Shown here one piece after another: positions 29,101 to 45,813 of a stretch of DNA of 64,000 nt. Source of the stretch: Rebecca billardiae RCC1528 (Eukaryota; Protista; Haptophyta); assembly GCA_965240325.2 (NCBI GenBank), contig OZ251232.1, forward strand, positions 1,612,001 through 1,676,000. Direction: 5' to 3'. The notes under the pieces were generated by a model. The model worked only from the letters and a program-made list of their open reading frames with translations, ran no database searches and had not been told where the DNA came from. How positions within the stretch are numbered: position 1 is the first letter of the stretch; the number at the start of each line of letters is the position of its first letter. The position numbers and the translations under genes were made by a program.

Positions 29101-32100
29101 ATGAGAACCCTGCTCGGCTTGGCCTCGACAGCGCGGGACGGCCTCATTATCGTCACCGACCCGGGTCCAGATCCAGATGACGTGAAGGTGGGCCGCTCGG
29201 CGCGCATCGCGCCGCTCCGTCTGTCCACACGCCGTTCGCCCCGCTCACCGCCGTCCCGTGTGCGCCTGCTCTCGCTGCGCGCGTGTGTCCGCTGTTTGCA
29301 GGCACTTCTCATCGCAGCGATCCTGCACAAGCAGGGCCAGCTCGACCTGCTCGGAGTGGTGGCAAATGGCGGGCGTGATCCCACCTCGCGCGCTGCCCTC
29401 GCCCGGTGCATCCTCGACCACGTCGGCGAGCGCGACGTGCCTGTGGGCGTCGGTACCGCGTCGCCGAGCGATGCGCCGCCAATGCCGCACGAGTTCTCGC
29501 TCGAGGGCTTCGAGTCGGTGGACCGGAGCCGGCTAGAGGACGGGGCGCGCCTGCTAGTACGCGTATTGGAGGCCGCGCCCACCGCGAGCGTCACGATCCT
29601 GCTCATCTCCAGCCTGCGTGACTTTGCGGACATTGCTCGCACTCGTCCAGAGCTGGTGCTCGCCAAGGTGAGGGAGGTGGCCATCATGGGCGGGCTCGTC
29701 CCCGACGACGACGCGCCGGGCGGGTACGCGGCGGACGCGGCGACGAACAACAACTTCGACCGAGGCGCCGCCACCTTCACCTACCGCTTCTGCTTCGAGC
29801 AGGGCATGCCGATGACGGTCGTCTCTCGGCACATCATCCCGATGTTGCCGATGCACCTCGCGCGCTCCTTTGCCGACCGCACGGAGTGCCCCGTGATGCG
29901 CTACCTCGCCGACGCGCAGTTTCTCGGCCTCGCGGGTGCGCGCGCGCTGCGCCCATACGGCGTATCGTCACCGTGCGGTTGGCACCTCGCAGCGCCACGC
30001 GCTCGCATGCGCTCGCCGTATGCGCTCATCCCCACCCCCTGCATTTGCGCGTGGTGCGACGCGCATGTTGTTGTGGGTGGCGGCGGCGAGCAGGGCTCTG
30101 GAGACGGCTCTGCACAGGCGAGCTGCCTGCACGCTGCACCAAACAGTGGTACTTCGAGACCTTCTGCGACATCGACCGCTCTACATTCGAGGCACGAGGG
30201 CTCGACCGCCTTGGTGCGGACGCGGACATCATCTCGCTGCTGAACGGCTACGTGAAACCGTGCGCGCGCAAACGCGCCCTGCCACTGCTGCTGCCTGCCG
30301 CGCTGCCGACTTTTGCACATTGCCAGTCTGCCACCGCCAGCCTGCCCAACCAGCCCGCCGGGTGGCCAGCCCGGGGGCGTTGAACGTGGGGGTAGCGATC
30401 GCGCGTGCGCGGCGACCGGGGCCCTTGGCGCGCACGGCGCTCGCTCACCTCGCCCTTCTGGCTGCGCGCGCCCTGCCCACGCCGCGCACCGCACGGCAGG
30501 TACGACGTGATCGCGCTGATGGCTGTGCTCGAGCACACGCGCGGCCTCTTCGCCGACGCGCGCCACGCCGTGCAGCCTGCGGCGCGCGGCCGGAGGCCGG
30601 TGGAGCACCGCCTGCTGATCCAGCCGTGGCAGGCGCTGCCGTCCGAGCCGGTGCTCTCGCTGCTGCGCGACGTGTACATCGAGGTGGTGCTCGCGTCCAA
30701 CGGAGCCGCCGCCGATATGCCCCCGCGCCGAGGCGCGCTCGTGCGCATGTCGTCTGGCTCAGGCACCTCGGATCCCCCCGGTGGCGCCGGCGCCGGTCTC
30801 GGGCTCGGCGGGAGCGCGATGAGCGCGGCCGGTGGCTCCCAGCTCGCCACGTCGGCCGAGACGGCGGCGGCGATCGCGGCGGCGGCGGCGGCGGCGGCGG
30901 CGAGCATGCAGCACGTGCCACCGCGCGCGCGGCCGGAGAGGCTGCAGCTCCCCGTCGTCGACTCCCGGCTGCGCGCACGGCTGAGCGGCGAGGGCGCGCA
31001 CATCGTCAGCTCACCGCGCGGCTCGATGGACGAGGGCAGCTCGCCGACGCGCGCGGACAAGTTGCGCCTGCCCACGCTCGCGGAGGTCCCAATCCCGGGG
31101 CCGCTGAGCCGGGACGAGACGCTGGGCGTGCTCACCACCGCGCTTGAGCACGCGCGCGAGCTGCACCGCCGCCGCACGCCGCATGCCCTCGTCGTGGGTG
31201 CTGCGGTCGTGCTGGCGGCTCTGCTCGCGTGCGCGGCCGACTTCTTGACGACGGCGGCGCTGAGCGTCGCGGACCCTTTCCGCCGCCCACCGTTCCGAGC
31301 ACGAGTGCTGGCGTACACGTGCACGGCGTTGGCGGGCACGCCGCCCATACTCGTCTGCGTGCGGCCAGCCGGGACGCAGCGCGAGCGCATGACGCACAGC
31401 GCCAGGGCGCTCGCCGCGCTGCTCGTGGCAATCGTCGCCGCGCACGTGCGCGCGCACACGTACCGGCCGGCGATTGCGCGCGGAGCGACGACGACCGCAT
31501 GCGCGAGCGCGCTCGTGTGCGCGGGCGTGATGCTGTGGCGCGCGGAGGCGATGCGCAGGCACCGCATCTCGCCGCAGGCGGCGCTGCGCTCGCTCTGGGC
31601 CGCCGGCACCGCGTGGCTCTGTGCGTACGCCGGTTGCCTCAGCGCGATCGCGCGTGCCGAGGGCTGGCAGTGGTCGGCAGCTGCCGACGGCGCTCTCAAC
31701 GTGCTCGCGGCTGCGTGCGTCACCTGGGCGGCGTGGGCTCGGCTGCGGCGCGCAGTCCGCTGCCTCTTGCACCCGGGCACTGCCGGGCAGCTGAGCCGGC
31801 GCGAGCAGGCCATCGTCGGAAGGCTCACGCCGCTCGCGCCGCTGGCCCCGCTGCTCGGGTTTGGCGCACCGCACGAGCGCGCGGACCTCGGGAGCATCTG
31901 CCACGCGGCGGCCGTCACGCTGCGCGGCGTGAGCCTCGACCGAGCCGCGCGCACCTCGCAGTGGCTCGAGGCGGCGTTCAGCACGGTGGCAGACGGCGGC
32001 GGCGGCGGCGATGACGACTCCAGCGGTGGCGGCCTTCCCAGCGGCGTGGGGAGCGCGGGCGCCGGCCAAGGCCGCGGGCGCGCGGCGGGTCACATCTCGC

Positions 32101-32732
32101 CGCGGCGCCGCACGTCGGGTCCGGCGCTCGTGCCATCGTGGCTGCCGACGACGGGCGCGTCCAGCGCCGCGCGCATCGACGCGTATGTCTGCCACTCGCG
32201 CCACGACTCGGCCTCGGCGCGGCGCGACGCGCTGCTGCGCTGGGCGGAGCGCTTTGAGCAGCGGCACCGGCGCCCACCGCGCATCTACATCGACGGCGGC
32301 TGCGAGGACCTGTCGCTGCTGACGCACGAGCGGCTGGCGCATACACTCGTCCACCTGGCGAGCGTTCGCATACTGCTGATCCTCCCCGGGCCGCGCTTTG
32401 CCACGCAGCTGCGGCCCATCGTGCAGCTTTACTGCTGGCAGCTCATGCGCTCCGCGATCGACGTGGAGGTCAGCCTGGCGGCGCGCACCGAGCGCGGGGC
32501 GAACTCGACCATCTCGCAGTTTGACACGTTTGCCGTGGCCATGTGCGTGCCCGAGCCCGACCCGACGGAGCAGGCGTGTTTCGTGCGCGTCGTGGAGCAG
32601 GCGGGTGTGGCGCACTTCAACGAGGTCGTACGCGCCTACCTACCGGCTGTGCGCAACGCAGCATCCTCGGATGCCGCGCTTGGGGGCACGCCGAGTGCGC
32701 GCGCGACCGCCGTGCCGGCGGCGGGTCGGTGA
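29101..32732 (+). CDS. Nucleoside hydrolase (IU-NH fold) - ~6TM - TIR-like fusion protein, paralog A, 4 exons
   Basis: IIVTDPGPDPDD, VVANGG, ISSLRD, IMGG, TNNNFD and KPYD (NH domain). Six hydrophobic helices at about 31190-31740. C-terminal IDAYVCHSRHD...W...IYIDGGCED...LLILPGP...IVQL...FNEVVR (TIR-like). Introns 29188-29301, 29936-30093 and 30260-30499. Confidence 0.82.
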
Positions 32733-33470
32733 GCAGTACGACTACACGAGACTGTCTTGTACGACTTTGAGTGTCACGAACTTAGCTATGTGCTACAACA
32801 GCATCATACAGTATCGTCTTCTTGCGTACTCATTTCATTGCAGTCTGACGTACACGCTCGGCTGCGCCTTGGCACAGTGTGCTCTCGCCTAATTGACACC
32901 AACTCACTCATCGCTGCTTGTAACCCGGTGATCAAACTCAAAGACTACACCCATTCACTTTCAGACTGTCATCACGCGAGTAAAAATGAACCGCGGAGAA
33001 ACCATCATCATCCTCCTCCATTTACGAACCGCTTCATATTGGGATGATGGTAGTTGATCATTGACATTGATGATCGACCACTAAGATCGGAACTGAATTT
33101 CATGAAGGGAATAAGATACTATGGAGATAGTTTCGTCAGGGTTTGGGTACGGTTTCACCGTTTCAAACTGTCAACGTCGTAATACGGTATTATGAACACC
33201 GGACTTTTACGATGGAGTCGCCGTCAGCCGCGGCGGTGCATCAAGTCCAGCTTTGACTGAGACGTCATCCTTGGCCCCCTGACGCATTGTTGTCCTCCGT
33301 TGGACTCGTAGCTGAAGTGAACTTCGCCCGCTCATCCGGTAGCAGCTCGCGTGGCCGATCAGCCGCCAGACGCAGGAGTCAGAGGTATCCGGTCGCGCAA
33401 GTGGACGAGACACGAGTGCTTCGCCTGAAGCGACGAGAGGTGTCAGTGTGTCGCTGCATAGAGGCTGCCA

Positions 33471-34751
33471 TCATCCGCCCTCAGCTGCAGCCTGCGCCGA
33501 CGCGTCGTGCAACCCGTCGCCCCCCGTGTGCGCCGCGTCGCACCCCGCAGCCTCAGCCAGCTGGCGCTCAAAGTGTCGCCGCTCTTCGCGCAGTGTGTGC
33601 GCGATGCGGTCGCCGCACCGGCGCTCGAGGCGTTTGATCGCGTCGAGCTGCGTCTGCGCAAACGCCACGGCCGCCTCGGAGTCCGTCGTGCTTGCGAATG
33701 GGCGGTGCTTCGCCGCCCGGCGCACGGCCTCGAGCTCCCGGCCCAACGCGCGTGCGTCCGCACTCACGCACGCGCGCGAAAAGGCGGCCCACACAAAGTC
33801 GATCGCCACCTCGCTCGGGTGGAGCATGTCCGGCGCGTAGAAGCGGTAGTCGCGCAGCTCGTCGAGCACGAGCTCGTACGCGGGGAAGTAGCACACGCCC
33901 GGCAGCGCGTGCGAGCTGTCCACGGTCGCTGCGTGAGCACCCGCGCCTCTGCCCGCTCGTCCGTCCTCAGACGAAGGCTCTGCGCGCGACTGCTGCAGCG
34001 CATGCGCTGCGAGCAGGCAGGAGGCCTTGGACAGCGCGTTGCCGTGCGCGCCGTCCTTCCAGTGACGCACCGGCGACACCGTGAGCACGACGTGCAGCTC
34101 GGGCCGCACCGCGCGCACGGCGCGCACGCCCGCCGCGAGCGCTGCCGCGGCCTCGCCAGGCTCCAGCAGGACTTTGGCAAACTGCTCCGGCGGTTGGCGG
34201 TGGCAGTTGGCGACGACCCGGCCCGCGGCCACCGGGGCGCCGGGCTGGGTGCGGTAGGCCCAGGCGGTACCGAGCGTGAGGAATAGCGCGCGCGCCTCGC
34301 GAAGCGCGGCGTGGCTTGACGCCAGCCGCGCGTTCATCCGCGCGAGCGTCGCATCCACGCCCGCGCCGCCCAGTGCCGAGTGGTGTTCAAACGACACGTA
34401 CTGCCCCGAGTGAGGCAGCGGTCCGATGAGCTCGGAGCGCTCGTACGGCTGAGCAGATGCGATGCGCTCGAGCGCCGTGCCGATCGAGAGCGGGTTGTAC
34501 AGGATCCCATGCGCCTCGTTGACCGACGCGCGGAGGCCGAGCCCAGCAAGCCGCGCGCCCATGTGCTCGGCAAAGCAGCTGCCCACGCACAGCACCGTGT
34601 CCTCCGTGCGCAGGGCGAAGGGCGCGCGCGGCACGCTGACAGCCGTGCGAAATGTGGGCTCCGCGGGCGAGCCACGCGCCGCCGACAGGGGCACGAGGGC
34701 GAGCAGCCCGAGGTAGACAGAGTGACGGACGGAGACGCGCATCGCCGCCAT
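33471..34751 (-). CDS. GSCFA-family (SGNH hydrolase-like) protein with N-terminal signal
   Basis: VGSCFAEH, YNPLSI, TLGTAW, VANCH, TVSPVRHWKDG, YFPAYE and DELRDYRFY..DMLHP. Likely start MAAMRV at 34751. Confidence 0.9.
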   Translation of the reverse strand: MAAMRVSVRHSVYLGLLALVPLSAARGSPAEPTFRTAVSVPRAPFALRTEDTVLCVGSCFAEHMGARLAGLGLRASVNEAHGILYNPLSIGTALERIASAQPYERSELIGPLPHSGQYVSFEHHSALGGAGVDATLARMNARLASSHAALREARALFLTLGTAWAYRTQPGAPVAAGRVVANCHRQPPEQFAKVLLEPGEAAAALAAGVRAVRAVRPELHVVLTVSPVRHWKDGAHGNALSKASCLLAAHALQQSRAEPSSEDGRAGRGAGAHAATVDSSHALPGVCYFPAYELVLDELRDYRFYAPDMLHPSEVAIDFVWAAFSRACVSADARALGRELEAVRRAAKHRPFASTTDSEAAVAFAQTQLDAIKRLERRCGDRIAHTLREERRHFERQLAEAAGCDAAHTGGDGLHDASAQAAAEGG

Positions 34752-34939
34752 CGTGATTCGTGCGTGCATGCACACGTGCGTCCTCGGATTTCGTTTTCGG
34801 CTTCGAATTATCTTTGTGAGCATCATGAATTCATGATGATCGTCAATCGTCATCAAAACATTAACATACAGCAGCAGCGCTGCGACGCGAGGGGTGCGGT
34901 GGATCCGCTCACAGCTGTCATCCCGCCGCCGCCAGCAGC

Positions 34940-36688
34940 TCAGTCGTGCAGCAGCAGTCGCGTGCGCTCCTTCTGTGAGCCGATGTACTGGTTCATCGCC
35001 ACGAGCCTGGCCACCTCCGGGTCGATCTGCTGGAAGCTTTGGCCGCGCGGCGGCGGCCCGCCGATCCAGAGGCCCTCTTCCGGCACGAAGCGCGCGCCCT
35101 CGCCGTCCTCCGACATGTCGTCGACCGAGACGGCGCCGTACGCGCCGCAGCCGGTGCGCGCCGTGAGCACGCGCCCGATCCACACTGCGAGTGGCAGGCA
35201 GAGCAGCGGCCCCGCGATCACGAGCACGCCCCCCTGCGCGTGCGTGCTCGGCTCGGGAGCGCCGAGCGTGGCCGTGCCGTGAGTGACGCGCGTGGCGACG
35301 AGCCGAGGGTCGGCCGTCAGCCTCACCTCCACGCCCGTGTCGCCGAGCTCGAGCCGTGGCGGCGGGTCGTCGGCGCGCGGCAGCCGCTTCGGCCCGCGCG
35401 CTGGAGCCAGCGGGCCGTACTGCGACGCCCCCAGCGCGCCCATCGGCGCCCTGAGCACCGCAGGCGGCAGCGTGCCAGTTGGGCCGCAGCCGAGTTCGGC
35501 GCGCAGCGCGGCCGCGGCGCGCTGCGCGCCGGGCATGCCCTCCGTGGCGGCAGCGGCGTCGTCGGGTTCGAGCGAGGTGCCCGCCGACCACGCCGTGGCG
35601 TTCGAGGCGCGCACTCTACCGTCTGCGCCCACGTCGATCGCGATGCACAGGTGCGCCAGGGCCTCGCGCAGCACGCACGCAACGCCGTGCGCGCCGGCGC
35701 CGCGATCGCCCGCACCGCCCGCACCGCCTGCGCTGTCTGGAGGGCTCAGCCGCTCGCACTCGCTCACAAAGCCGGCAGCGGCGGTGCTGGGCGCGGAGCG
35801 CACGCGCGTGCGCGTGAGCGCGACCGGCGGGAGGGCCAGCCTCGAGCGCACCCACCTCTCCGCGCCGCTGCTCAGCGCGTCAGCCCCAGACGCGCCGGCC
35901 GAGTCGGGCGGTGCAGTCCTGTGCTCAAGAGCGACCTCTGCCGAGCCACCCGCTCTGAGTGCGGCGTGTAGGGTGACGTTGGCGAGCAGTGGGCTGGCCC
36001 ATGCCTCGAGCGAGGGCAGCAGCGCCCCGTCCTCCCATGCCTCGCGCGCGCCGTCCCCGGCCGCGCCCGTCACCCGCTTGAGCGCCACGCGCGTCAGCCT
36101 CTGCGCCGGCTGCGACAACCGTTGGGTCGAGCGGAGCGCGCTGCGGGCGCCACCGCTCACGAAGCACGCCGCGTCGTACTGCAGCCGGTCCGGCGTGTCG
36201 GACAGGTCGTGCCGGCTGCTGCGGCTCGGCGCGTGGACGAGATGGAGCGGCCGTGCCGCGCGCCACACCGAGCCGTTGGGCAGCGCCAACGCGACGGAGG
36301 CGTTGAGCTCAAGCCGCAGGAGCCGCGGCAGGATCGCGCGACGCCATTCGCGGACAGCGTCCGCGTACTCAGCGGCCATCGCGCGGCGGCGCGCCTCGGC
36401 GGGCGAGAGCACCTCGGGCACTCGGATGAGCCCGAGCCCGTGCACAAACATCCACGCGCCCAGCGCGAAGAGCGCGCACAACCCAAGCAGCATGAGCGCG
36501 TCCTCGCGCGTGCGCGCGCAGGCATGCGCACAGAGGCGTAATCTGCGCATGAGCGCGACGCCGCAGCCCTTCGCGTCCTCGGCTGCGGACGCCGCATGTT
36601 GGCTGCGCGTGAGCCGATCGCGCCGCGCCCGACGAATCGCCAGTGACAGCTTGGAGGGCTCGTGCGCAAGCCCTCGCGGCCGCGCCAT
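34940..36688 (-). CDS. Hypothetical two-pass membrane protein
   Basis: Long ORF with two hydrophobic helices (LMLLGLCALFALGAWMFVHG; GGVLVIAGPLLCLPLAVWIG) flanking a large loop. Confidence 0.6.
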   Translation of the reverse strand: MARPRGLAHEPSKLSLAIRRARRDRLTRSQHAASAAEDAKGCGVALMRRLRLCAHACARTREDALMLLGLCALFALGAWMFVHGLGLIRVPEVLSPAEARRRAMAAEYADAVREWRRAILPRLLRLELNASVALALPNGSVWRAARPLHLVHAPSRSSRHDLSDTPDRLQYDAACFVSGGARSALRSTQRLSQPAQRLTRVALKRVTGAAGDGAREAWEDGALLPSLEAWASPLLANVTLHAALRAGGSAEVALEHRTAPPDSAGASGADALSSGAERWVRSRLALPPVALTRTRVRSAPSTAAAGFVSECERLSPPDSAGGAGGAGDRGAGAHGVACVLREALAHLCIAIDVGADGRVRASNATAWSAGTSLEPDDAAAATEGMPGAQRAAAALRAELGCGPTGTLPPAVLRAPMGALGASQYGPLAPARGPKRLPRADDPPPRLELGDTGVEVRLTADPRLVATRVTHGTATLGAPEPSTHAQGGVLVIAGPLLCLPLAVWIGRVLTARTGCGAYGAVSVDDMSEDGEGARFVPEEGLWIGGPPPRGQSFQQIDPEVARLVAMNQYIGSQKERTRLLLHD

Positions 36689-36850
36689 CGACCATCGAGT
36701 GATCGACGGGCGTGGCACAACTGAGCGATCAGCGATGAGGTCCACACAGTCCGGCTTTTTCCCGGACCGGCCGGTAGAACACTGGAACCGCGTGTGCGTG
36801 CGGGTTTGCGCGCCCGCGCGGTGCGTACTGTCATAGGGGCTTCAAGAGCG

Positions 36851-38865
36851 ATGTCGGCCCCAGCCACGGCGCCCTTCGCCGTGGGCGAGCGCGTGGTGAT
36901 CAGTGGGCTGACGCGAGCCACCCATCTCAACGGCCGGGCCGGGGTCGTGCTCGCCGAGCCGACCGGAAGCGGTCGCGACGAGCGCTGCTCCGTGTCGCTC
37001 GACGCTGACCGCGACGCGCTCCCGGCCGAGCCGGCTGGGCCGCGCTACTCGGCGCCAGAGGAGGCATTCGTCGAGTGCTTCCTCTCGCAGGACGACTTCC
37101 TCCAAGCCGGGCTGCACCCCACGCCGCAGCTCGCGTTGGACGACTGCCGCACCGCCGCCGCGCTCTCACGCCGCGACCCGGCCACAGGGTATGCGCGTGG
37201 CATTGCTGCCGGGCCTCGCATGTTCCCAGCGTGGCCGATGGCGCTGCAGCGGTATGCGGAGTTCCATCCGGAGCGCTCGGGCCGGCTGGTGCTGTACGAC
37301 GAGCAGATGCGCGGGCTGCAGCGCACGCTGCAGACGATGAGCGGCGCCGGCGGCGCGCCGGTTCGGTGGCCGGATGGGCTCCCGCGCGCGGCCAGGCTCG
37401 AGGGGCACTTCTTCCTTGCGCTGGTCTGGCAGTCGATCGACATGCGCTGGGCGTTCCACCACGAGGAAGGCGCGCGCGCCTTCTTCCGCCACGAGCTGCT
37501 CGCGCGGCACAGCGAGGAGGCGGGCGTGCCTGGGCTGTCACCGCCTCTGCGCCGCACGCCGAGCGCGGAGCTGGCCGCGGCCGCGGACGAGCACCTGCTG
37601 CTCTTGGCTCCTCCGGTGCCCGAGCTGGAGGGGAAGTGGCCGTGCAGCGTGTGCCTGGCGAACGCTCTGTTCCGCGTGGGCCGCGTGTGCGCCAAGGTCC
37701 ACCTCAGCATCGCCGTCGTCTCGCCATTTGACCAAGCGCCGCTCGGCATCGCCGCCGGCCGCGCGTGCGCGCGCGCGGCCGCGCGCGTACGCGCAAGCGC
37801 GGCGCATGACGTACTCACAGCGGCGGCGCCGGCGGCGGCTGCGGGCGGCGCTGGCGCACCAGCCGCCGCCGAGTCGGCACAGCCTGCCGCCATCGTCGCC
37901 GTGCGCCCCGCCAACCTCCTCCGGCGGCGCGTGGCGAGCGACGGCCCCAGCGTCTCGTCTGGCATTCCGTCATCGTCTGCGGAGGGTGGCGCACCGACGG
38001 CGCGCGGCGGGCAGTCGGCTGCGCCGCTGGACGAGGCGACGCCAATCCCGATGAGCGCGGCGCGGGCTGCGGGCTTTGGCGCGGCGCTCGAGCAGGTGTG
38101 CGCGAGCTGCGGCGGGGCCGGAGCCAAGTTCTGCTCCCGCTGCCGAGTCGTCGCCTACTGCAGGTGCGGCGCGCGCGGACGCTGCCGCACGCGCGTCGCG
38201 TCCTTGCCGCCTGGCGTGCACCTGTGCCCCCCTGCCGCGCGCGCTCAGCTTCTGTCAAGCACGCTCACCCGCGGCCGCGCCCGCGCGCCCGCGCGCACGC
38301 GCGCGCCCGCAGCGAGGCATGCCAGCGCGAGGACTGGCGCGCGCACCGGGAGCTCTGCCGCGCGCGCACCACCAGCGGCCCCCGGCCCGCGCGCTCGGCG
38401 CCCGTTGAGTCGCCGTTCCGGCCCGAGCCCTCGGCACCGGCCGACTTTGCTCTGCGCTACGGCCGTGCCATCAACCGCCTTCGGCCGGTTGGCGCGCAGG
38501 CGCTGGGCGCGGCGGAGGCGGCGGCGGGAGTGGAGGCGCTCGAGGCGCTCGTCAGAGAGGCGGCGGCGCGGCGGGACGGCGGCGAGGACGGCCCCTTCGA
38601 CGAGTGGATCGCGCTCCTCAAAGCGCGGCTCGCCGTCCAGGTGACTCACGTCCACCCCTCGCGGTCCGTCGAGCTGCACCTCGAGGCCGCCGCCACCTTC
38701 CGCGCGCTGGGCGACGAGTACCGCGAGGGGAACTGCTACGCGGATGCGTGCTTCGGTCTTGCGGCGCTGGGCGAGCACACGCGCGCCGAGGCGTACAAGG
38801 TTCGTGGGCTCAAGCTGATGCAGAAGGCCATCGCCCGGCAGTGGCAGCAGCGGCCGCGCAGCTGA
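36851..38865 (+). CDS. MYND zinc-finger protein with SH3-like N-terminal module and TPR-like C-terminus, 2 exons
   Basis: CASC...KFCSRC...YC|SEACQREDWRAHRELC is restored by intron 38164-38312. N-terminal GERVVISGL...LNGRAGVV. Confidence 0.85.
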
Positions 38866-39236
38866 GTCCGAGTCATTGCTGTGTCGCTGAGTGCAGATTG
38901 TACGTCCACGTCCAGTCGTGAACGCACGCGCGAGGCTCGAGGCTCCAGCTTCGGTCGTCTGCCCCCGCGGTACCCTGCCCCTGGCACTCCAAGTCTTCCA
39001 GTTCCTCGGTGGGGCGCGTAACATTCGAGTGTTGTAAAATCGTCGTTACGGAATTGGGGAATGTCGTTTCATCAATGATATCATCCCGTAACGGCACTCG
39101 CATAGGTAAATTTGGTTGCGATCTCGTGAACGACCCTATCTCGAGATAATACATTCCTACCGTTTTTTTCGCGTCGCGGTCCTTGAAGCTCCAAAGGACG
39201 ACGCACGGCACAAGTGCGCCTCGCGCGACCACGCCG

Positions 39237-41211
39237 ATGGGCCTCGATTGGCTGCTGCCTTGGCGGCGGCGGCCGGCGCTGCTGCTGATCACTGATCCGG
39301 GTCCTGACCCCGACGACATCAAGGTTCGCGCGCTCGCGACGGGCGCCTGACGCGCGCTCGATCATTTCACACGGCCGCGCGCCCGCGTGCGCTCCGCTCC
39401 GCGCAGGCGATCCTGGTCGTCGCCGCGCTGCACCGGCGGCGGCAGATCGCGGTGAAGGGCGTGATCGCCAACGGCGGTTGCCAGGCGCTCGCGCGCGCCA
39501 AGCTCGCGCGCTGCGTGCTCGACAAGGTCGGCGCGCGCGACATCCCCGTCGGCATCGGCTCGGCGGGCAAACCGTATGAGCCTGTCGCGCACGAGTACGC
39601 GCTGCCCGGATATGAAAGCGTGGACGCGGCGAGGCTGGAGCCGGGGCACGCGCTGCTGATGCGCGCGCTGCGGCACGCGCGCGACAAGAGCCTCACCATC
39701 GTCTGCATCTCCTCGCTGCGCGACCTGGCGGACGCGATCGCCGAGGCGCGGCCGCTTGTGGTGCGCAAGACGCTGCGCGTCGCGATCCAGGGCGGGCTGG
39801 AGTGGAGCGACGAGAAGACGGCGTGGGAGCCGGACACGTCGGTGAACAACGAGTTCGACCGCGACGCGGCGAGTGCCGTGTACGCCTTCTGCTTCGCCGA
39901 GGGCGTGCCGCTCACCGTCGTCTCGCGGCACGCCGTGCCGCTGCTGCCAATGCAGGTGTGTGTGCGCGCGGGCGTTCGCGCGGCGGCGCGCGCGCTTGTG
40001 GCGGGCGCGCACGGGCGCGTGCTGTGCCCCGCCGCCCGCCCAGCCGCCCTCACGCAGCCCGCCCTGTCCCCAACCCTCCCACATCTCCCGCCACAGCTCG
40101 CGCGCTCCTTCGCGGAGCGGACGGAGAGCGACGTGCTGCGGTGCGCGCCGCCCGCCCGCCCGCGCGCACGCCCGCGCGCCCGCCCGCCCCCCGGCATGCA
40201 CGCACGCACGCCCACGCCCCGCTCGCGTCGCGCGCTCCCGCCCTCCGCCCCACGCGCCGCGCTCGGCCGCAGCTACCTCGCCAACGCGCAGTTCCTCGGG
40301 CTCGCCGGCCTGTGGCGCAAGCTGTGCGAGGGCCGCCTCCCCGCGCGCTGCACCAAGCAGTGGTACTTCGAGACCTTCTGCGGCGTGCCGGCTGCCAAGT
40401 TCGGCGCGCACGGCTACGACGCGCTCGACGGCACGGCGGACATCACGCAGCATCTGAACGGGTGCGCGCATACGTGTGGCGCGGCCCTGGCACACACGCC
40501 GGCTGACGCACCGCCGCCGCGCGCGCGCCGTGCACCCGCGCCGTGCACTCGCGCCGCCGCCCGCGCCGCCGCCCGCGCCGCCGCACCCGCAGCTACGTGA
40601 AACCTTACGACGTGGTCGCGCTGATGGCGGCGCTGCCGCACACGCAGCGCGCCTTCGGCCCCGGCGCGCCGCCGCGCGACGCGCTCGCGCCCGCCCCGTC
40701 CGTGCGCACCTCGCCCCCGCGCACGCCCTCGGTGCGCGCGCCGTCCATGGTGTCGCTCCGGAGCGCCAACGCCAACGCGTCACGCTCGAGTTCGCTCTCC
40801 TCCTTCTCGCGCGCCGGCGGCGGCCATTGCCTCTACCTGTCGCCGGAGCACGCGATCGACGTGGCGCACGTGGTCAAGCTGCTGCGCAACGTGTACCACG
40901 AGGCGGCGCTCACGGACGAGGCGGCGGGCGCGGAGCGCGGCCCCCGATCCGCGGCCGCGTCGTCGGCGGCGAGCGGTGCGCAAGGCGAGGAGGCGGCCGG
41001 CGCGGCGCGCGGCTCAAAGCGCAGTGGCTCAGGGCATTCGTCGCGCCGCAGCTCGAAGCTCCGCGTGCACCCGCGGCTGGCGCGCGCGCAGCGCGCCGAC
41101 GCGGACGAGCTGCGAGCGTCCGCGTGGACGGTTGGCTCGGGGCGCACGCGCACCGCCTTCTCTGACACGACCGAGGGCGATGGCTCGCACGGCGGCCGCG
41201 GCAGCGAGGCG

Positions 41212-41244
<33 letters not shown>

Positions 41245-43428
41245 CGGTGGGCGCGCGAGCCTGGCGCTCTGCTGGAGGAGGCGGAGATTGTTGCGTTGCT
41301 CGAGGCGGCGGTCCGCCGCGCGCGCGAGCGCGCGAGGCTGGCCACGCTCCTCGCCGCGCTGCTCGCCTTCTCGCTCTTCGTCGCGGCCGCGGCGATGCGC
41401 GGCCTGGACGCAGCGGCGTGGGTGCAATCGAGCGCCGGCCGGCGGCGCGAGGTGTTGGATGGGGGTCGCGGCGACGCGGCCGCGCTCGACTCGGCGGTGG
41501 CGGAGGACGCGCTCTGGATGCGGTGGCGCGCGGCGGGGCTGACCCTGCACGTCGCGTTCGCGCTGTGCGCGCTCGCGCTGCAGCCGATCCCGTCGCACTC
41601 GCGCATCACGCGCGCGTCCGCGCTCGTGTTTTGCCTCGTCGTCGGCGTGGACGGTTACAATGCGATGCGCACAGGCGTGCGCGGTCTGTCGGCTCTGGAG
41701 GAGCAGGCGGGCTTGCTCCCGTGCGAGGCGGGGCTCGGCGCGGCGCTGCGCGCCGCGATGCACGGCGTGATCGCGACAGGCGGCGCGGCGTACCTGGCCA
41801 TCGTCGCGGCACTCGCCGCCGTCTGGCTCGGCACCGCGCACCAACCGCCAGTGTCGCGCACGCGCGCGCGCGTGCGCGCGGTGTGGCTGGCTAACGCGTG
41901 CGCGGCCGCGCTGCTCGCGCTGCTGCTGCTCGGCGCGAGCGTGCTCTGTGGGCCGGTCACCGGCTGGCTCGCGAGCCGGCCGACGGCGGGCATCCGCGAG
42001 TACATCCACGCGCACACCGGCGCCACGTGCGCCGTCGCCATCGCGCTGCTCTGGCCGGGCTCGCGCGAGCGCACGCGCTGGGCGCTACTGCGCGCGGCTG
42101 CGCACTGCGCAAGCACGCTGCGGCCCGTGCGCGCCGGCACGGGCGGCGCGCCGCTGCTCGCCGCGCTCGCGCCCCTCGTGCAGTTCGGCGAGGGCGAGAG
42201 CGCGGACTCGCTCGGTCAGCTCACGCGCGAGGCGCTCCGCGTGCTGCGCGGCGTGGCGCTCGACGCGGCCTTCTTCGCGCGCGCCGAGGCGGGCTCGCAT
42301 CGCGGCCGCGCGGCCGCTGGCAGGAGCAGCCTCAGCCGCGCGGGCGGCGGCGCGCGCGCGCTGCGGGCCGCGCGGCTGTACTCGCGCGCGGACGAGGGTC
42401 GGAACACGGGGGCGAGCGACTTGAGCCTTCTCGACACGCCGGCGTCGTCGCTCTCCGGCCTCGGCCGACGGCTCAGCGCAGCCGCGCGCAGCTCGGGCGC
42501 CCGCTTGTCCGGCGCCGGCGCGCCCGCGCCGCCGCGGTCGGGCGTCCTGGGCAGTTGCTGCTTTGGCGGCGGCGCACGGCTCGTCGGCCGGCGCAAGCTC
42601 TCGCTGCAGCAGCTCGGCGAGGTCGCGCAGCACGCGATGCACAACCTGCTCGACGCGCGCGCGGACGTGCGAGCCGTCTCGACGCTCGAGCAGCTGCGCC
42701 ACGCGCAGGCGCCGGAGGTGGACCGGGTGGTAGTACACTCAGCTTTTGACGACCCTCGGCTGCGGATGCGCGCGCTCGCGGAGTGGGGCGCGCGCTTCGA
42801 GGCGGCGAACGGCCGGCCGGCGCGCGTGTGGCTGTGGGCGGCGTGCGCGGATGCGTCGCTGACGCACGCGGAGCAGCTCGCGCACGTCGTCGTCTACCTG
42901 TGCCGCGCACGCGGGCTGCTCGTCCTGGCCGGACCCACCGTTCCAGATTCGCTCGAATGCGTCGTGCAACTGCTTGCGTTCCGCGCGTGCGGCGGCGCGG
43001 CCTCGGCCGTCGACGTCGCCGTCGTGGGCGAGAGCGAGGCGGCGCGCCGCGCGGCGGTCGCCGCGTTCGATGCGTTCCACGTCGTCTACGCGCGCGCGCG
43101 CTCGCGCTCCGCGGCGGAGCGCCACGCCCTCGTCGCCGCGGTCGAGCAGGTGGGCGCGCCGCGCGTGAACGAGGCGGTGCGAGCTCTGCTGCCCGCCGTT
43201 CAGCGCGCGGCGGCGGCCGCCGCCGCCGCGGACGCAAAGCAGTCGGACCGTGCGGGCGGGAGCGTCGGCGAGGCCGAGGGGCCCGCGGGCGCGGCGGCCG
43301 ACGGCGAGGACGCCACGGCGGACGGCGCGGACGAGGAGGCCGCCGCCGCGCGCGAGGCTGGCGAGGCCAGCGACGAGACGGCGACGGCGGTCGAGGGGAT
43401 GGTGGAGGGCGTGGAGGCGGCGGAGTGA
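39237..43428 (+). CDS. Nucleoside hydrolase (IU-NH fold) - ~6TM - TIR-like fusion protein, paralog B, 5 exons
   Basis: MGLDWLLPWRRRPALLLITDPGPDPDDIK|AILVV, VIANGG, ISSLRD, SVNNEFD, LPARCTKQWYFETFC and KPYDVVALM. Six TM helices, then VDRVVVHSAFDD...W...VWLWAACAD...LLVLAGPT...CVVQL...VNEAVR. Introns 39324-39406, 39956-40096, 40141-40272 and 40462-40592. Confidence 0.82.
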
Positions 43429-43698: not shown

Positions 43699-45813
43699 TC
43701 ACTCCATCTCAGCAGTGCTGATCCCAGCAGATGCCGCTGAGTAGCCTGCGGCTGCTGGCGCCGGCGGATGAGCACCGCCGTTATTCCGGCCGTTACTCAA
43801 TCCGTTAGCAGCCCGGCCGCTGCCCGGCGTCCGCTTGGCCGGGCTCGGCCAAATCTCCCCATCGACGTCGTCGTCGTCGTCATCGTCGTGACGCGTGCGC
43901 GGGCTGTGCGCTGCGCTGCCAGTGTCGACGCACGCGGCAAGGCCTCGGAGTGCCCTGGCAAGCACACGGCGCGGCGCGTCCGTACACGAGCGCCACGCCG
44001 CGCCGGCCGCGCCCACCGCACCGGGCGCCGCCGCGCCGCGCGAGCCGTCGGCGCCCTCGTCCTCAGCGTCCTCTTCGCCCTGCTCGACGTTCGAGAGCCG
44101 CCGGATCGGCCCCGAAAGCCTGCGCACCAGGCCGCGCGCCCCGCCGCCCCCGCCGCCGTTGATCAGCAGCGGCGCGGAGGGCGAGCCGGCCGTCCCCTCG
44201 TCTGCAAAATGCACGATGGACTGCTTGCGCCGGGCGGGCGTGCCCGCCGCGCCGACCCCGCCGACCCGTCCGTCCGGCGGGGGCGTCGGCGCGGCCGGGT
44301 TGGGCGGCGGCGGCGTCGGCGGCGCCGCGCGCGGCGCCGCCGTCTGCCCCGGCCCCGCTGTCGTCGAGCGCCCGTCCTCCCAGTCCCGCCACGGCGCGCC
44401 GCGCAGCATCGCCTCCACCTCCTCCAGGATTTCGTCATCAGCATACCGCCCGCCGTTGGGCGCCCGCAGCCCGTCCCAGAACGCGAGCCACTCGTGCAGC
44501 GAGATGGCGTGGCTCGCGTCGTCGTCGACCTCGGAGAACATCGCCAGCGCCGACAGCGTGCCGAACCTGCCCAGCGGCCCGGACTGCCAGTGCGTCTCCG
44601 CCTCTTGCAGGTCAACCTCGCCGTTGCCGTTCCGGTCGAGGCTCTCAAAAAGTGCCGTGACGCGCGCGGCGAAGGCGGGCGGCATGGGCACGCGCGGCGG
44701 CGGCGACGCGTCGGTGCTCGAGGTGCTCGGCCTCGCGCCCGCATCCGCGAAGCTCAGCCGCGCGCTCGGCCGCCTCGAGCCGTTCTGCGACGACGACGAC
44801 GCGGACGATGCGCGCCTGTTGTGCGCGTGCGCGTGCGCGCCGGCGCCACTCGCGCACATGGGCGCGGGCGCGGGCAGCTCGGACGAGCGCGGCGCGGGCG
44901 GCGTGGACGACAGCGTGATCGCAGCCGGCGCCTCCCTCGCCGCCGCGCGCGCCTCCGCCATCGCCTCCGCCGCGCTCCCACTCGCGCCCGCGCCGAGGGC
45001 GGCGCTGCGCCCAGCGCTCGGCCGCCGCTCAAGGGAGGCGCCTGTGACTTCGGCGAGCTCGGCGGCGCGTGCCGCGGCGGCCTTGGCCTCCTCGGCCTCG
45101 AAGTGCGCGACCGCGGCCGCGCGCGCGGCGCGCGTCGCGCCCACCTGCGACCGGCGTGCCTCCTCCTGCGCCTCCTCCACCGCCTTGAGCTTCGCGCTCG
45201 CGCGGGGCGACGCCGACCAGAAGGAGAGTGATCGCGCGGAGCCGCCGCGCGAAAACGCGCGCGGCGGCCTCGCGAGCAGCTCGGCGGCGGTCATCGAGTT
45301 GGCTCGCGAGGCGCGCTGTGCGCTCGGGTCGAGTGTGGCGCCCACGTGCCCCGCGAATGCCGAGCTCCTCGACGCAGACGCCGGGTCGGACGACGGCGTC
45401 GCGGGCGGCGGCGGCGCAGCCACGCCGCTCATCAGGTCTGTCGTCGACGACGCGCGCGCGCCCATGGACAGGATGGCCTGGCTCATGCGCTCGTCGCGCT
45501 CGAGGCTGCGTCGCCTCGCCTCTGAATCGGTGCCCGCCTCCGCCGCGGCTGCGCGGGAGGGCCCGACCCCGCCGAGCCTCCCGTCCGGCGGCCTGTCCGC
45601 AGCTGCAGAAGCTCGCGCGCCGCCGGCTGCGGCGCCAGGGCCGCTCGGGGCTGCCGAGGCGGGCCGTGAGCGCGGTGCGGAACGTACTGGTGTGCTGGTC
45701 ACGGTACTTGCGGACGAGCTGCTCTCGAAGAGCGCGCGCGCCGCTTTCACACCGCCCGCGACGATCATGTCGCGCGGCGATGGCCGCGGCATCGTGTCGA
45801 CACGGCTGCTCAT
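43699..45813 (-). CDS. EF-hand calcium-binding protein with long disordered flanks
   Basis: Paired EF loops DRNGNGEVDLQE and DDDASHAISLHE in a 704-aa ORF. Confidence 0.8.
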   Translation of the reverse strand: MSSRVDTMPRPSPRDMIVAGGVKAARALFESSSSASTVTSTPVRSAPRSRPASAAPSGPGAAAGGARASAAADRPPDGRLGGVGPSRAAAAEAGTDSEARRRSLERDERMSQAILSMGARASSTTDLMSGVAAPPPPATPSSDPASASRSSAFAGHVGATLDPSAQRASRANSMTAAELLARPPRAFSRGGSARSLSFWSASPRASAKLKAVEEAQEEARRSQVGATRAARAAAVAHFEAEEAKAAAARAAELAEVTGASLERRPSAGRSAALGAGASGSAAEAMAEARAAAREAPAAITLSSTPPAPRSSELPAPAPMCASGAGAHAHAHNRRASSASSSSQNGSRRPSARLSFADAGARPSTSSTDASPPPRVPMPPAFAARVTALFESLDRNGNGEVDLQEAETHWQSGPLGRFGTLSALAMFSEVDDDASHAISLHEWLAFWDGLRAPNGGRYADDEILEEVEAMLRGAPWRDWEDGRSTTAGPGQTAAPRAAPPTPPPPNPAAPTPPPDGRVGGVGAAGTPARRKQSIVHFADEGTAGSPSAPLLINGGGGGGARGLVRRLSGPIRRLSNVEQGEEDAEDEGADGSRGAAAPGAVGAAGAAWRSCTDAPRRVLARALRGLAACVDTGSAAHSPRTRHDDDDDDDVDGEIWPSPAKRTPGSGRAANGLSNGRNNGGAHPPAPAAAGYSAASAGISTAEME

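Follow-up and report, generated by a model that had tools for sequence, protein, structure and literature searches.

What could a single membrane protein do with a nucleoside-hydrolase domain at one end and a TIR-fold domain at the other? This question is raised by two neighboring genes, here called g1 and g2, in a 64,000-nucleotide stretch of the genome of the haptophyte Rebecca billardiae RCC1528 (assembly GCA_965240325.2, contig OZ251232.1, positions 1,612,001 to 1,676,000 of the forward strand). We refer to this whole stretch as the window, and all coordinates given below are positions within it. An original prediction, made from the DNA letters, described the two genes as tandem paralogs that fuse a nucleoside hydrolase to about six transmembrane helices and a 'pseudo-TIR' domain. 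Here we propose that g1 and g2 are functional genes and belong to a large polytopic membrane protein family. Our analysis gives about an even chance to a reading in which they are membrane-bound components of TIR signaling, with a domain resembling the bacterial effector XopQ that would hydrolyze an ADP-ribose-type signal made by TIR domains. Quenching or relaying this signal is a likelier role for g1 and g2 themselves than producing it.

Results

Two genes of one architecture

The g1 gene (29101..32732, plus strand) is predicted to be spliced from four exons (29101-29187, 29302-29935, 30094-30259 and 30500-32732) into an mRNA for a protein of 1039 amino acids, which is colinear with the g2 protein and with the relative P0001. 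The g2 gene (39237..43428, plus strand) has five predicted exons (39237-39323, 39407-39955, 40097-40140, 40273-40461 and 40593-43428) and encodes 1234 amino acids. When the exons were joined by script, all seven introns (three in g1 and four in g2) had GT..AG ends and their removal restored one frame; five of the seven start with GTGCGC or GTTCGC. The two proteins can be aligned from end to end and have a common layout consisting of a nucleoside-hydrolase domain, a disordered linker, a six-helix membrane module, a second linker and a TIR-fold domain. The spliced models thus confirm that two genes sharing one architecture lie where the original prediction had placed them, and the motifs that it listed for the hydrolase part (TDPGPDPDD, ANGG, NNxFD and (K)PYD) and for the region beyond (LAPLxxFG and LRGVxLD) are present in both genes. 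Its statement that the hydrolase parts are similar and the transmembrane and TIR parts diverged also holds, with g1 and g2 being 58% identical over the hydrolase domain versus 32% over the membrane module and 36% over the TIR-like domain. The first linker of g1 (30615..31115, plus strand) is a low-complexity segment rich in Ala, Gly and Ser that is poorly conserved, being 32% identical to its g2 counterpart with many gaps.

That each gene encodes a single three-part polypeptide is strongly supported. The last conserved strand of the hydrolase, KPYDV(I/V)ALM, carries the Asp equivalent to XopQ D399, and in both genes the codon for this Asp lies inside the large last exon, which stays open, with no stop, across linker, membrane helices (six) and C-terminal domain. 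Because this final hydrolase strand shares an exon with the membrane and TIR parts, dividing either gene in two would cut the enzyme itself. We also looked for the architecture in the MMETSP transcriptomes, as the original prediction had suggested, and found three transcript open reading frames (ORFs) from related algae, P0001, P0015 and P0167, that carry the hydrolase, the membrane module and the C-terminal domain in one frame. Two of these, P0015 and P0167, are marked as complete by their source.

A hydrolase domain related to XopQ and HopQ1

The hydrolase domain occupies 29101..30614 in g1 (plus strand, amino acids 1-334, three introns within) and 39237..40833 in g2 (plus strand, amino acids 1-370, four introns within). 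In Pfam, the g1 ORF piece matches PF01156 (IU_nuc_hydro) with an expectation value (E) of 1.6e-10 and 41.6 bits, above the cut-off of 34.2, and the g2 exon piece, which holds only part of the domain, falls under the same cut-off with 26.3 bits (E 7.4e-06). A sequence search of the PDB at E≤0.01 returned matches to XopQ entries only (4KL0, 4P5F and 7JLU), the best E being about 1e-22 with the relative P0001 as the query and 7.5e-10 with g1 exon 2 alone. Among NCBIfam models the XopQ model is the top match for both genes (7.6e-14 for g1 and 7.1e-11 for g2), and UriH, a classical uridine hydrolase, matches g1 only, at 5e-4.

What defines the HopQ1-like clan, to which XopQ belongs, is a calcium motif of modified form, DXXXDXDD, where the canonical motif is DXDXXXDD (PMC11685791). 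Both genes have the modified form as DPGPDPDD at amino acids 20-27, read directly from the sequence at 29158..29181 in g1 and at 39294..39317 in g2 (both plus strand), and in g1 it holds the equivalents of XopQ D116 and D120. Across the family DXXXDXDD occurs in 14 of the 26 hydrolase-bearing proteins that were scanned (12 of 24 for the relatives alone), in 13 cases as DPGPDPDD. It is present in every relative with a complete N-terminus in which the pattern search located the region, and most of the remaining proteins come from truncated models whose first residue already lies within the domain.

What such an enzyme acts on has recently been reported for the bacterial members. XopQ and its homologues hydrolyze the O-glycosidic bond of 2'-cyclic ADP-ribose (2'cADPR) to give ADP-ribose (ADPR) with high efficiency, and they do not cleave 3'cADPR, cADPR, phosphoribosyl-AMP (pRib-AMP), 2',3'-cyclic nucleotide monophosphates (2',3'-cNMPs) or nucleosides (preprint 10.64898/2026.06.15.732069). 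The same preprint, in which eukaryotic fusions are not discussed, reports that TIR immunity, in plants as well as in a Thoeris system, is suppressed by this activity, that mutation of D120 or D399 abolishes 2'cADPR hydrolysis, and that D120N inactivates XopQ. In the structure with bound ADPR, L345, W361 and F366 recognize the base, and Y398 and Y311 contact the alpha-phosphate (10.1101/2020.08.13.246413). H433, and also Y279, count among the further ADPR contacts of XopQ.

We transferred these XopQ residues to g1 and g2 through a HMMER alignment against 4KL0, adding 81 to the chain index, and the mapping is validated by six checked positions, each of which falls on the expected type of residue. 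The equivalents of D116, D120, L345, W361, F366, Y398, D399 and H433 are kept in both genes, and with them most of the ADPR contacts. The Y and D of the KPYDV motif correspond to Y398 and D399; this motif spans intron 3 in g1 (30255..30509, plus strand), and in g2 (40600..40614, plus strand) it lies in the exon shared with the membrane and TIR parts. The block LPARCTKQWYFETFC, which the original prediction had rightly singled out as identical in g1 and g2, corresponds to the base-recognizing lid. By alignment to 4KL0, the equivalents of lid residues W361 and F366 lie in a KQWYFETF block (30141..30164 in g1, plus strand) that is likewise identical in g2.

On this sequence evidence, the hydrolase domain of g1 and g2 is assigned to the HopQ1/XopQ-like clan and not to the classical inosine-uridine nucleoside hydrolases (IU-NH). 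By homology its predicted activity would be calcium-dependent, a conclusion that is strongly supported along with the intactness of the catalytic aspartates. The expectation that these domains are N-ribohydrolases of the IU-NH or Urh1 type had to be given up, as the clan is a different one and its bacterial members did not act as nucleoside hydrolases. A scan of viral contigs for the hydrolase domain found no relative.

A divergent TIR-like fold with Gln at the catalytic position

The C-terminal domain lies at 32172..32666 in g1 and at 42715..43215 in g2 (both plus strand), and the g2 domain is a member of alignments A1 and A2. An AlphaFold model of the g1 domain (m16266d7784ef), built from a 66-sequence alignment, has a beta-alpha-beta-alpha pattern with a predicted local distance difference test score (pLDDT) of 95 and a predicted template-modeling score (pTM) of 0.90. 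Three fold searches with this model placed TIR domains first among the matches from outside the family, in agreement with what had been proposed from the DNA letters. Specifically, ranks 1-24 of a Foldseek search against the PDB are all plant TIR domains (SNC1, RPP1, RUN1, RPS4 and ROQ1), and other TIRs fill most of the 20 rows that follow. With VIA-align, run against all 48,161 representative chains, the top eight matches are TIR domains, among them SARM1 (Z 9.5), IL-18R-beta, RPS4, SpbK and MyD88, with Z of 8.5-9.5 over 115-135 residues at a root-mean-square deviation of 2.9-4.0. The ESM Atlas returned the haptophyte family's own clusters first, and then clusters of plant TIR-NLRs (TIR-containing proteins with nucleotide-binding and leucine-rich repeat parts) at template-modeling (TM) scores of 0.59-0.65. 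We therefore accept the C-terminal domain as a TIR fold, and given the moderate scores it represents a divergent branch.

Profile libraries recognize this branch poorly. No Pfam family matches the C-terminal domain of g1, g2 or P0001 even at E 10, NCBIfam gave no match to this domain, and a search of PADLOC-DB, which includes Thoeris ThsB, with five TIR-like domains and a single hydrolase domain returned no defense-system profile at E≤0.01. TIR_2 is weakly matched by five of the 66 relatives (best E 4.9e-4), and some relatives from Diacronema already have the UniProt label 'TIR domain-containing protein'. A family profile searched against the PDB found SIGIRR and TLR TIR domains at E 0.1-0.3 only, with the third strand and WC region as the aligned part, and in this alignment the LWCxxEL motif of the family lines up with the WC..E region of the TIR domains. 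A WLDxxC-like block presumably resembles the HET domain; HET (PF06985) matched one of the 66 relatives at E 0.03 and neither g1 nor g2, and the HET reading was set aside.

The catalytic column of the alignment, four residues past the Trp of the LWC motif, contains Glu in 37 of the 66 aligned relatives and Gln in nine, making Gln the second commonest residue. Counted over all collected proteins, the 177 domain hits have Glu 118 times and Gln 14 times, and among the hydrolase-bearing members Glu is found in 17 of 27. Both genes studied here have Gln, which is Gln938 in g1 (codon CAG, 32424..32426, plus strand) and Gln1082 in g2 (codon CAA, 42967..42969, plus strand). The LWC motif is changed in both copies as well, to LRP in g1 and LEC in g2, with the Trp replaced in each. 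Note that in an algal TIR the substitution E264Q abolished production of 3'cADPR (10.64898/2026.04.20.719644). Because their catalytic Glu is Gln, g1 and g2 probably cannot make a TIR signal. The term 'pseudo-TIR' thus fits these two genes and does not fit the family at large, in which the Glu is the prevailing residue.

A six-helix membrane module between two predicted cytosolic domains

The membrane module of g1 (31116..31940, plus strand) consists of a juxtamembrane helix, six transmembrane helices and a small conserved subdomain with LAPLAPLLGFG and LRGVSLD; that of g2 (41284..42264, plus strand) has the corresponding blocks LAALAPLVQFG and LRGVALD and is colinear with g1 and with the family. 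An AlphaFold model of g1 residues 502-1018 (m106328af8884, from a 43-sequence alignment) has a pLDDT of 82.6 and a pTM of 0.81. In the numbering of this model the helices are at 2-48, 58-80, 86-114, 119-147, 153-181 and 188-218, with the juxtamembrane helix running into helix 1; the six long helices are followed by the well-predicted subdomain that carries LAPL..FG and LRGV.LD, a disordered stretch and the TIR fold. The count of six transmembrane helices comes from this model for g1 and from hydropathy for the relative P0001.

Two further features bear on topology. The start of the hydrolase fold, near residue 15, is too close to the N-terminus for a signal peptide to fit ahead of it, and over 43 sequences the Lys plus Arg content is 9.7 for the N-terminal flank, loops 2-3 and 4-5 and the C-terminal flank versus 4.4 for the other loops. 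Since a signal peptide would not fit, the helices number six and the charges follow a positive-inside bias, the sequences support a topology in which both end domains of g1 and g2 face the cytosol, as had been anticipated from the even number of helices.

A homologous membrane module is present in 72 of the 151 collected family proteins, and the hydrolase was detected in 21 of these 72. Several of the other module-bearing proteins have truncated remnants of the hydrolase, which points to incomplete gene models. A fold search with the membrane module gave only generic helical bundles (best Z 9.6, which is below a meaningful level for bundles) and cytochrome b561 at Z 8.2, and we therefore place the module in no known fold; as the module was queried within the 517-residue model, a weak relative may be missed. 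An Atlas search with the membrane part of a relative returned uncharacterized haptophyte clusters only.

A large family in which g1 and g2 are old neighbors

A profile built from the C-terminal domains of g1, g2 and P0001 and searched against 1.84 billion representative sequences yielded 1614 proteins at E≤1e-3, 800 of them at E≤1e-10. The closest public proteins belong to Diacronema lutheri and Pavlovales sp. CCMP2436, both pavlovophyte haptophytes, or come from MMETSP transcriptomes, and their identity to g1 or g2 does not exceed 59%. The fusion family is large in public pavlovophyte data, where it is deposited as hypothetical proteins only, and all of the named members that carry the hydrolase fusion are pavlovophyte. 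Nearly all long proteins with a XopQ-like hydrolase also carry the membrane module, the TIR-like domain or both.

Several family relatives have other arrangements. In P0181 (a Logan assembly protein of 947 amino acids) the TIR-like domain (266-431) stands ahead of the hydrolase (478-776) and the membrane module was not detected, giving a fusion in reverse order. P0184 (a JGI metagenome protein of 1652 amino acids) has a XopQ-like hydrolase (147-465) followed by WD40 repeats (about 540-890), which is a receptor-like layout with neither TIR nor membrane module. The TIR-like domain is also found in Symbiodiniaceae, where P0129 and P0161 from the dinoflagellate Cladocopium have a clear RLWCxMEL, and the domain is thereby not restricted to haptophytes. 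Haptophyte Atlas clusters with a heme NO-binding (HNOB) domain or a C-type lectin align to the membrane-TIR model with weak TM scores of 0.38-0.41 by query. These structural matches hint that the membrane-TIR module may be combined with different N-terminal domains in haptophytes. Pfam gave no match for ten relatives that are without the hydrolase.

Regarding the relation of g1 to g2, a tree of 36 hydrolase domains is a star-like, poorly resolved radiation in which the two are not supported as sisters, and a recent tandem duplication is unsupported by this tree. The introns lie within 29188-30499 in g1 and 39324-40592 in g2, and the two genes have the position of the first one alone in common (phase 0, following codon 29), which points to gain, loss or sliding of introns since the duplication. 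Two of the introns are four codons apart in the two genes, one before and one after YVKP. A comparison of the introns for an introner-like element found none in common and no shared sequence beyond GC-rich ends. Repeats around the genes consist of coding-level similarity and GCG-rich low complexity only, with no flanking duplication and no mobile-element ends. We conclude that g1 and g2 are old neighboring members of the family; the description 'tandem paralogs' is right in that they are neighbors of one family, and the tree and the single shared intron position do not show them to be closest relatives.

Setting of the two genes in the window

The window has a G+C content of about 72% throughout, and its genes, with short GT..AG introns, are eukaryotic. 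The two genes are separated by 6.5 kilobases, in which a gene of the GSCFA family lies on the minus strand (33474-34730; PF08885, E 4e-71) along with two more long ORFs without a Pfam match (34943-36745, minus strand, and 36794-38641, plus strand). Directly downstream of g2 is a long Ala/Ser-rich ORF on the minus strand (43702-45813) that has a weak EF-hand match under the cut-off (E 4e-5).

Discussion

A possible role in shaping a TIR-type signal

The domain assignments suggest a mechanism in which the family acts in TIR-type nucleotide signaling at a membrane. Members that bear the catalytic Glu would cleave NAD+ into a signal derived from ADP-ribose, and the XopQ-like domain would hydrolyze this signal, as bacterial XopQ does when it converts 2'cADPR to ADPR. 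The result would be an off-switch or processing step built into the complex itself. In such a scheme g1 and g2 would join assemblies of their active TIR relatives through the TIR domain and bring the hydrolase along, which would make them signal-quenching or signal-shaping subunits. That the hydrolase may act on a molecule made by TIR domains is suggested because the two domains have been fused repeatedly and in two orders, because of the published activity of XopQ, and because plant TIRs, the closest structural matches, are known makers of 2'cADPR (preprint 10.64898/2026.06.15.732069).

Several observations weigh against this proposal. The NCBIfam XopQ model NF041355 scores g1 at 51 and g2 at 42 bits, with an equivalog cut-off of 500, and because these scores are so far under it the two hydrolases are, by sequence, relatives of XopQ and not orthologues. 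XopQ Y279 (Thr or Val here) and Y311 (a two-residue gap here) are not conserved in g1 and g2, and therefore the substrate may differ from 2'cADPR. At the other end of the protein, the Foldseek scores are moderate (E 2e-3 to 1.4e-2, TM 0.42-0.53), and with VIA-align the nucleoside 2-deoxyribosyltransferases at Z 8.5 are nearly level with a best TIR match of Z 9.5. The Pfam TIR families PF01582, PF13676 and PF08937 do not match g1, g2 or P0001 even at E 10, so that of the two Pfam families named in the original prediction only PF01156 was found, above its cut-off in g1 and below it in the g2 piece. Long open frames come cheaply at 72% G+C, making frame integrity alone weak evidence, and a look-up of RNA runs for the source genome listed none, which leaves the splicing of the two genes, and their expression, as predictions. 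Finally, the enzymatic activity of family members is something that we infer, and the assembly of Gln-type with Glu-type members purely so.

Other readings of the same proteins

If the TIR-like domain, catalytic or otherwise, serves for clustering only, the N-terminal hydrolase could itself be the weapon. In this scenario, which we consider unlikely, clustering would switch on the hydrolase as a death or depletion effector that destroys an essential ribosyl metabolite, as in the effector domains of fungal NLR-like proteins. The catalytic motif of the hydrolase is indeed much better conserved across the family than the TIR Glu, the same type of hydrolase is fused to WD40 repeats in the receptor-like layout of P0184, and an N-terminal position is where many such proteins have their effector domain. 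Yet XopQ and HopQ1, the sole characterized relatives, act with high specificity on a signaling molecule and show no activity with nucleosides or nucleotides in bulk, and the TIR Glu is kept in about two thirds of the relatives, which suggests that TIR catalysis matters in the family. It is a still more doubtful suggestion that the hydrolase-like domain is a ligand sensor which binds an ADP-ribose-type molecule and gates the membrane module or the TIR domain, making the protein a receptor or ligand-gated channel and not an enzyme. Conservation of the base-recognizing lid residues would suit such a sensor, as would the HNOB and C-type lectin domains, typical sensor domains that other haptophyte clusters appear, from weak structural matches, to carry on the same membrane-TIR module. 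A pure binding domain would not be expected, though, to retain the calcium-binding and catalytic aspartates (DPGPDPDD and KPYD) wherever the region is present, and the membrane bundle is unlike any known channel.

The Pfam assignment to IU_nuc_hydro, together with the nucleoside 2-deoxyribosyltransferases among the fold matches (Z 7-8.5), could be taken to mean ordinary nucleoside salvage, with the six-helix module as a transporter, the hydrolase splitting nucleosides that this module imports or exports and the C-terminus being 2-deoxyribosyltransferase-like or regulatory. We think this very improbable given that the calcium motif is of the HopQ1 type and not the canonical one, scores against canonical hydrolases are much poorer than those against XopQ, nucleosides are not cleaved by XopQ, TIR domains outrank the deoxyribosyltransferases in all three fold searches, and the fold search with the membrane module gave no similarity to known transporters. 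Least credible of all is that g1 and g2 are decaying, non-functional copies with the loss of the TIR Glu as the first sign, which we regard as only a slight chance. The Glu is lost in both genes, the Trp or Cys of LWC is changed too, and the cheapness of open frames and the reliance of both models on sequence, in place of RNA evidence, would be compatible with decay. But at 32-58% identity both copies keep the hydrolase catalytic residues, the splice sites, all six membrane helices and both conserved blocks of the membrane module (LAPL..FG and LRGV.LD), as well as the near-invariant TIR-fold positions D7, D16, D122, F124 and N154, and the g1 TIR domain folds at the high pLDDT given above. The rank of Gln as second commonest residue in the catalytic column (9 of 66 and 14 of 177) further suggests that it is a recurring functional state.

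Comparison with known systems

The proposed TIR-signaling component combines elements that are each known from elsewhere. As in XopQ, HopQ1 and the clan of HopQ1-like proteins (HLPs), the hydrolase has the PF01156 fold family, the DXXXDXDD motif and eight equivalent residues, and XopQ is its sole sequence match of solved structure. Unlike the secreted type III effectors of bacteria, g1 and g2 are intron-containing algal genes in which the hydrolase is fused to a membrane module and a TIR fold. HLPs in algae including haptophytes were reported in 2018, with no mention of TIR domains, membrane parts or domain architecture (PMC6019455). The C-terminal domain shares its alpha/beta fold with plant TIRs (RPS4, RPP1, SNC1, RUN1 and ROQ1), SARM1 and ThsB, and the family consensus is of the WCxxEL type with the catalytic Glu. 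In contrast, g1 and g2 themselves have Gln, lack a Pfam TIR match and are about 10% identical to solved TIRs, and where plant TIRs and SARM1 have NB-ARC/LRR or ARM/SAM partners they have a six-helix membrane bundle.

Closer to home, multi-transmembrane TIR genes of the haptophyte Gephyrocapsa huxleyi respond to virus infection (New Phytologist, PMC12489294). Their products, which we liken to g1 and g2 by description only, start with several transmembrane helices, after which comes a cytosolic TIR similar to signal-producing TIRs; unlike in g1 and g2, the Glu is conserved, no further domains are reported and there is no hydrolase fusion (PMC12489294).

The idea of a degrader acting on the pathway of a signal maker also has precedent in the pathogen and phage enzymes that cleave or sequester TIR signals, a comparison made in preprint 10.64898/2026.06.15.732069. 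These signal-degrading enzymes differ from g1 and g2 in their folds and signals, whereas here the fusion is covalent and in a eukaryotic membrane protein, with a functional coupling that we infer. The same difference applies to type III CRISPR immunity, where self-limiting Csm6 and ring nucleases are signal-degrading enzymes of a nucleotide-signaling system. Both domains, and the notion of a signal-degrading enzyme, were thus known already, and what is new is their fusion and its membrane setting; a search of the literature found no paper on a nucleoside hydrolase-TIR fusion, in line with the original prediction.

Significance

XopQ and HopQ1 were for twenty years an enzyme without a substrate, until the 2'cADPR preprint of 2026. 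A natural fusion of a XopQ-type domain to a plant-like TIR in an alga is independent genomic support for the two belonging to one shared pathway, to which the fusion in reverse order adds. The fusion further suggests that organisms apply XopQ chemistry to themselves, ending or shaping a TIR signal. For haptophytes, in which antiviral immunity is almost unknown, this family is a compact system for asking what their TIR domains make, and g1 and g2, with an intact hydrolase and a Gln-substituted TIR, are natural separation-of-function variants.

Taken as a whole, the picture would be one of membrane-anchored TIR signaling in haptophytes in which a plant-like TIR signal maker and a host XopQ-type signal hydrolase reside on one polypeptide, with Gln-type copies such as g1 and g2 being quenching or decoy subunits. 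We put this full combination forward tentatively, as a possibility that is more apt to fail than to hold in all its parts. If it is true, signaling by 2'cADPR-like molecules would exist beyond land plants and bacteria, XopQ-type enzymes would natively serve as regulators of TIR pathways in eukaryotes, and the bacterial effector family would mirror, or derive from, such host regulators.

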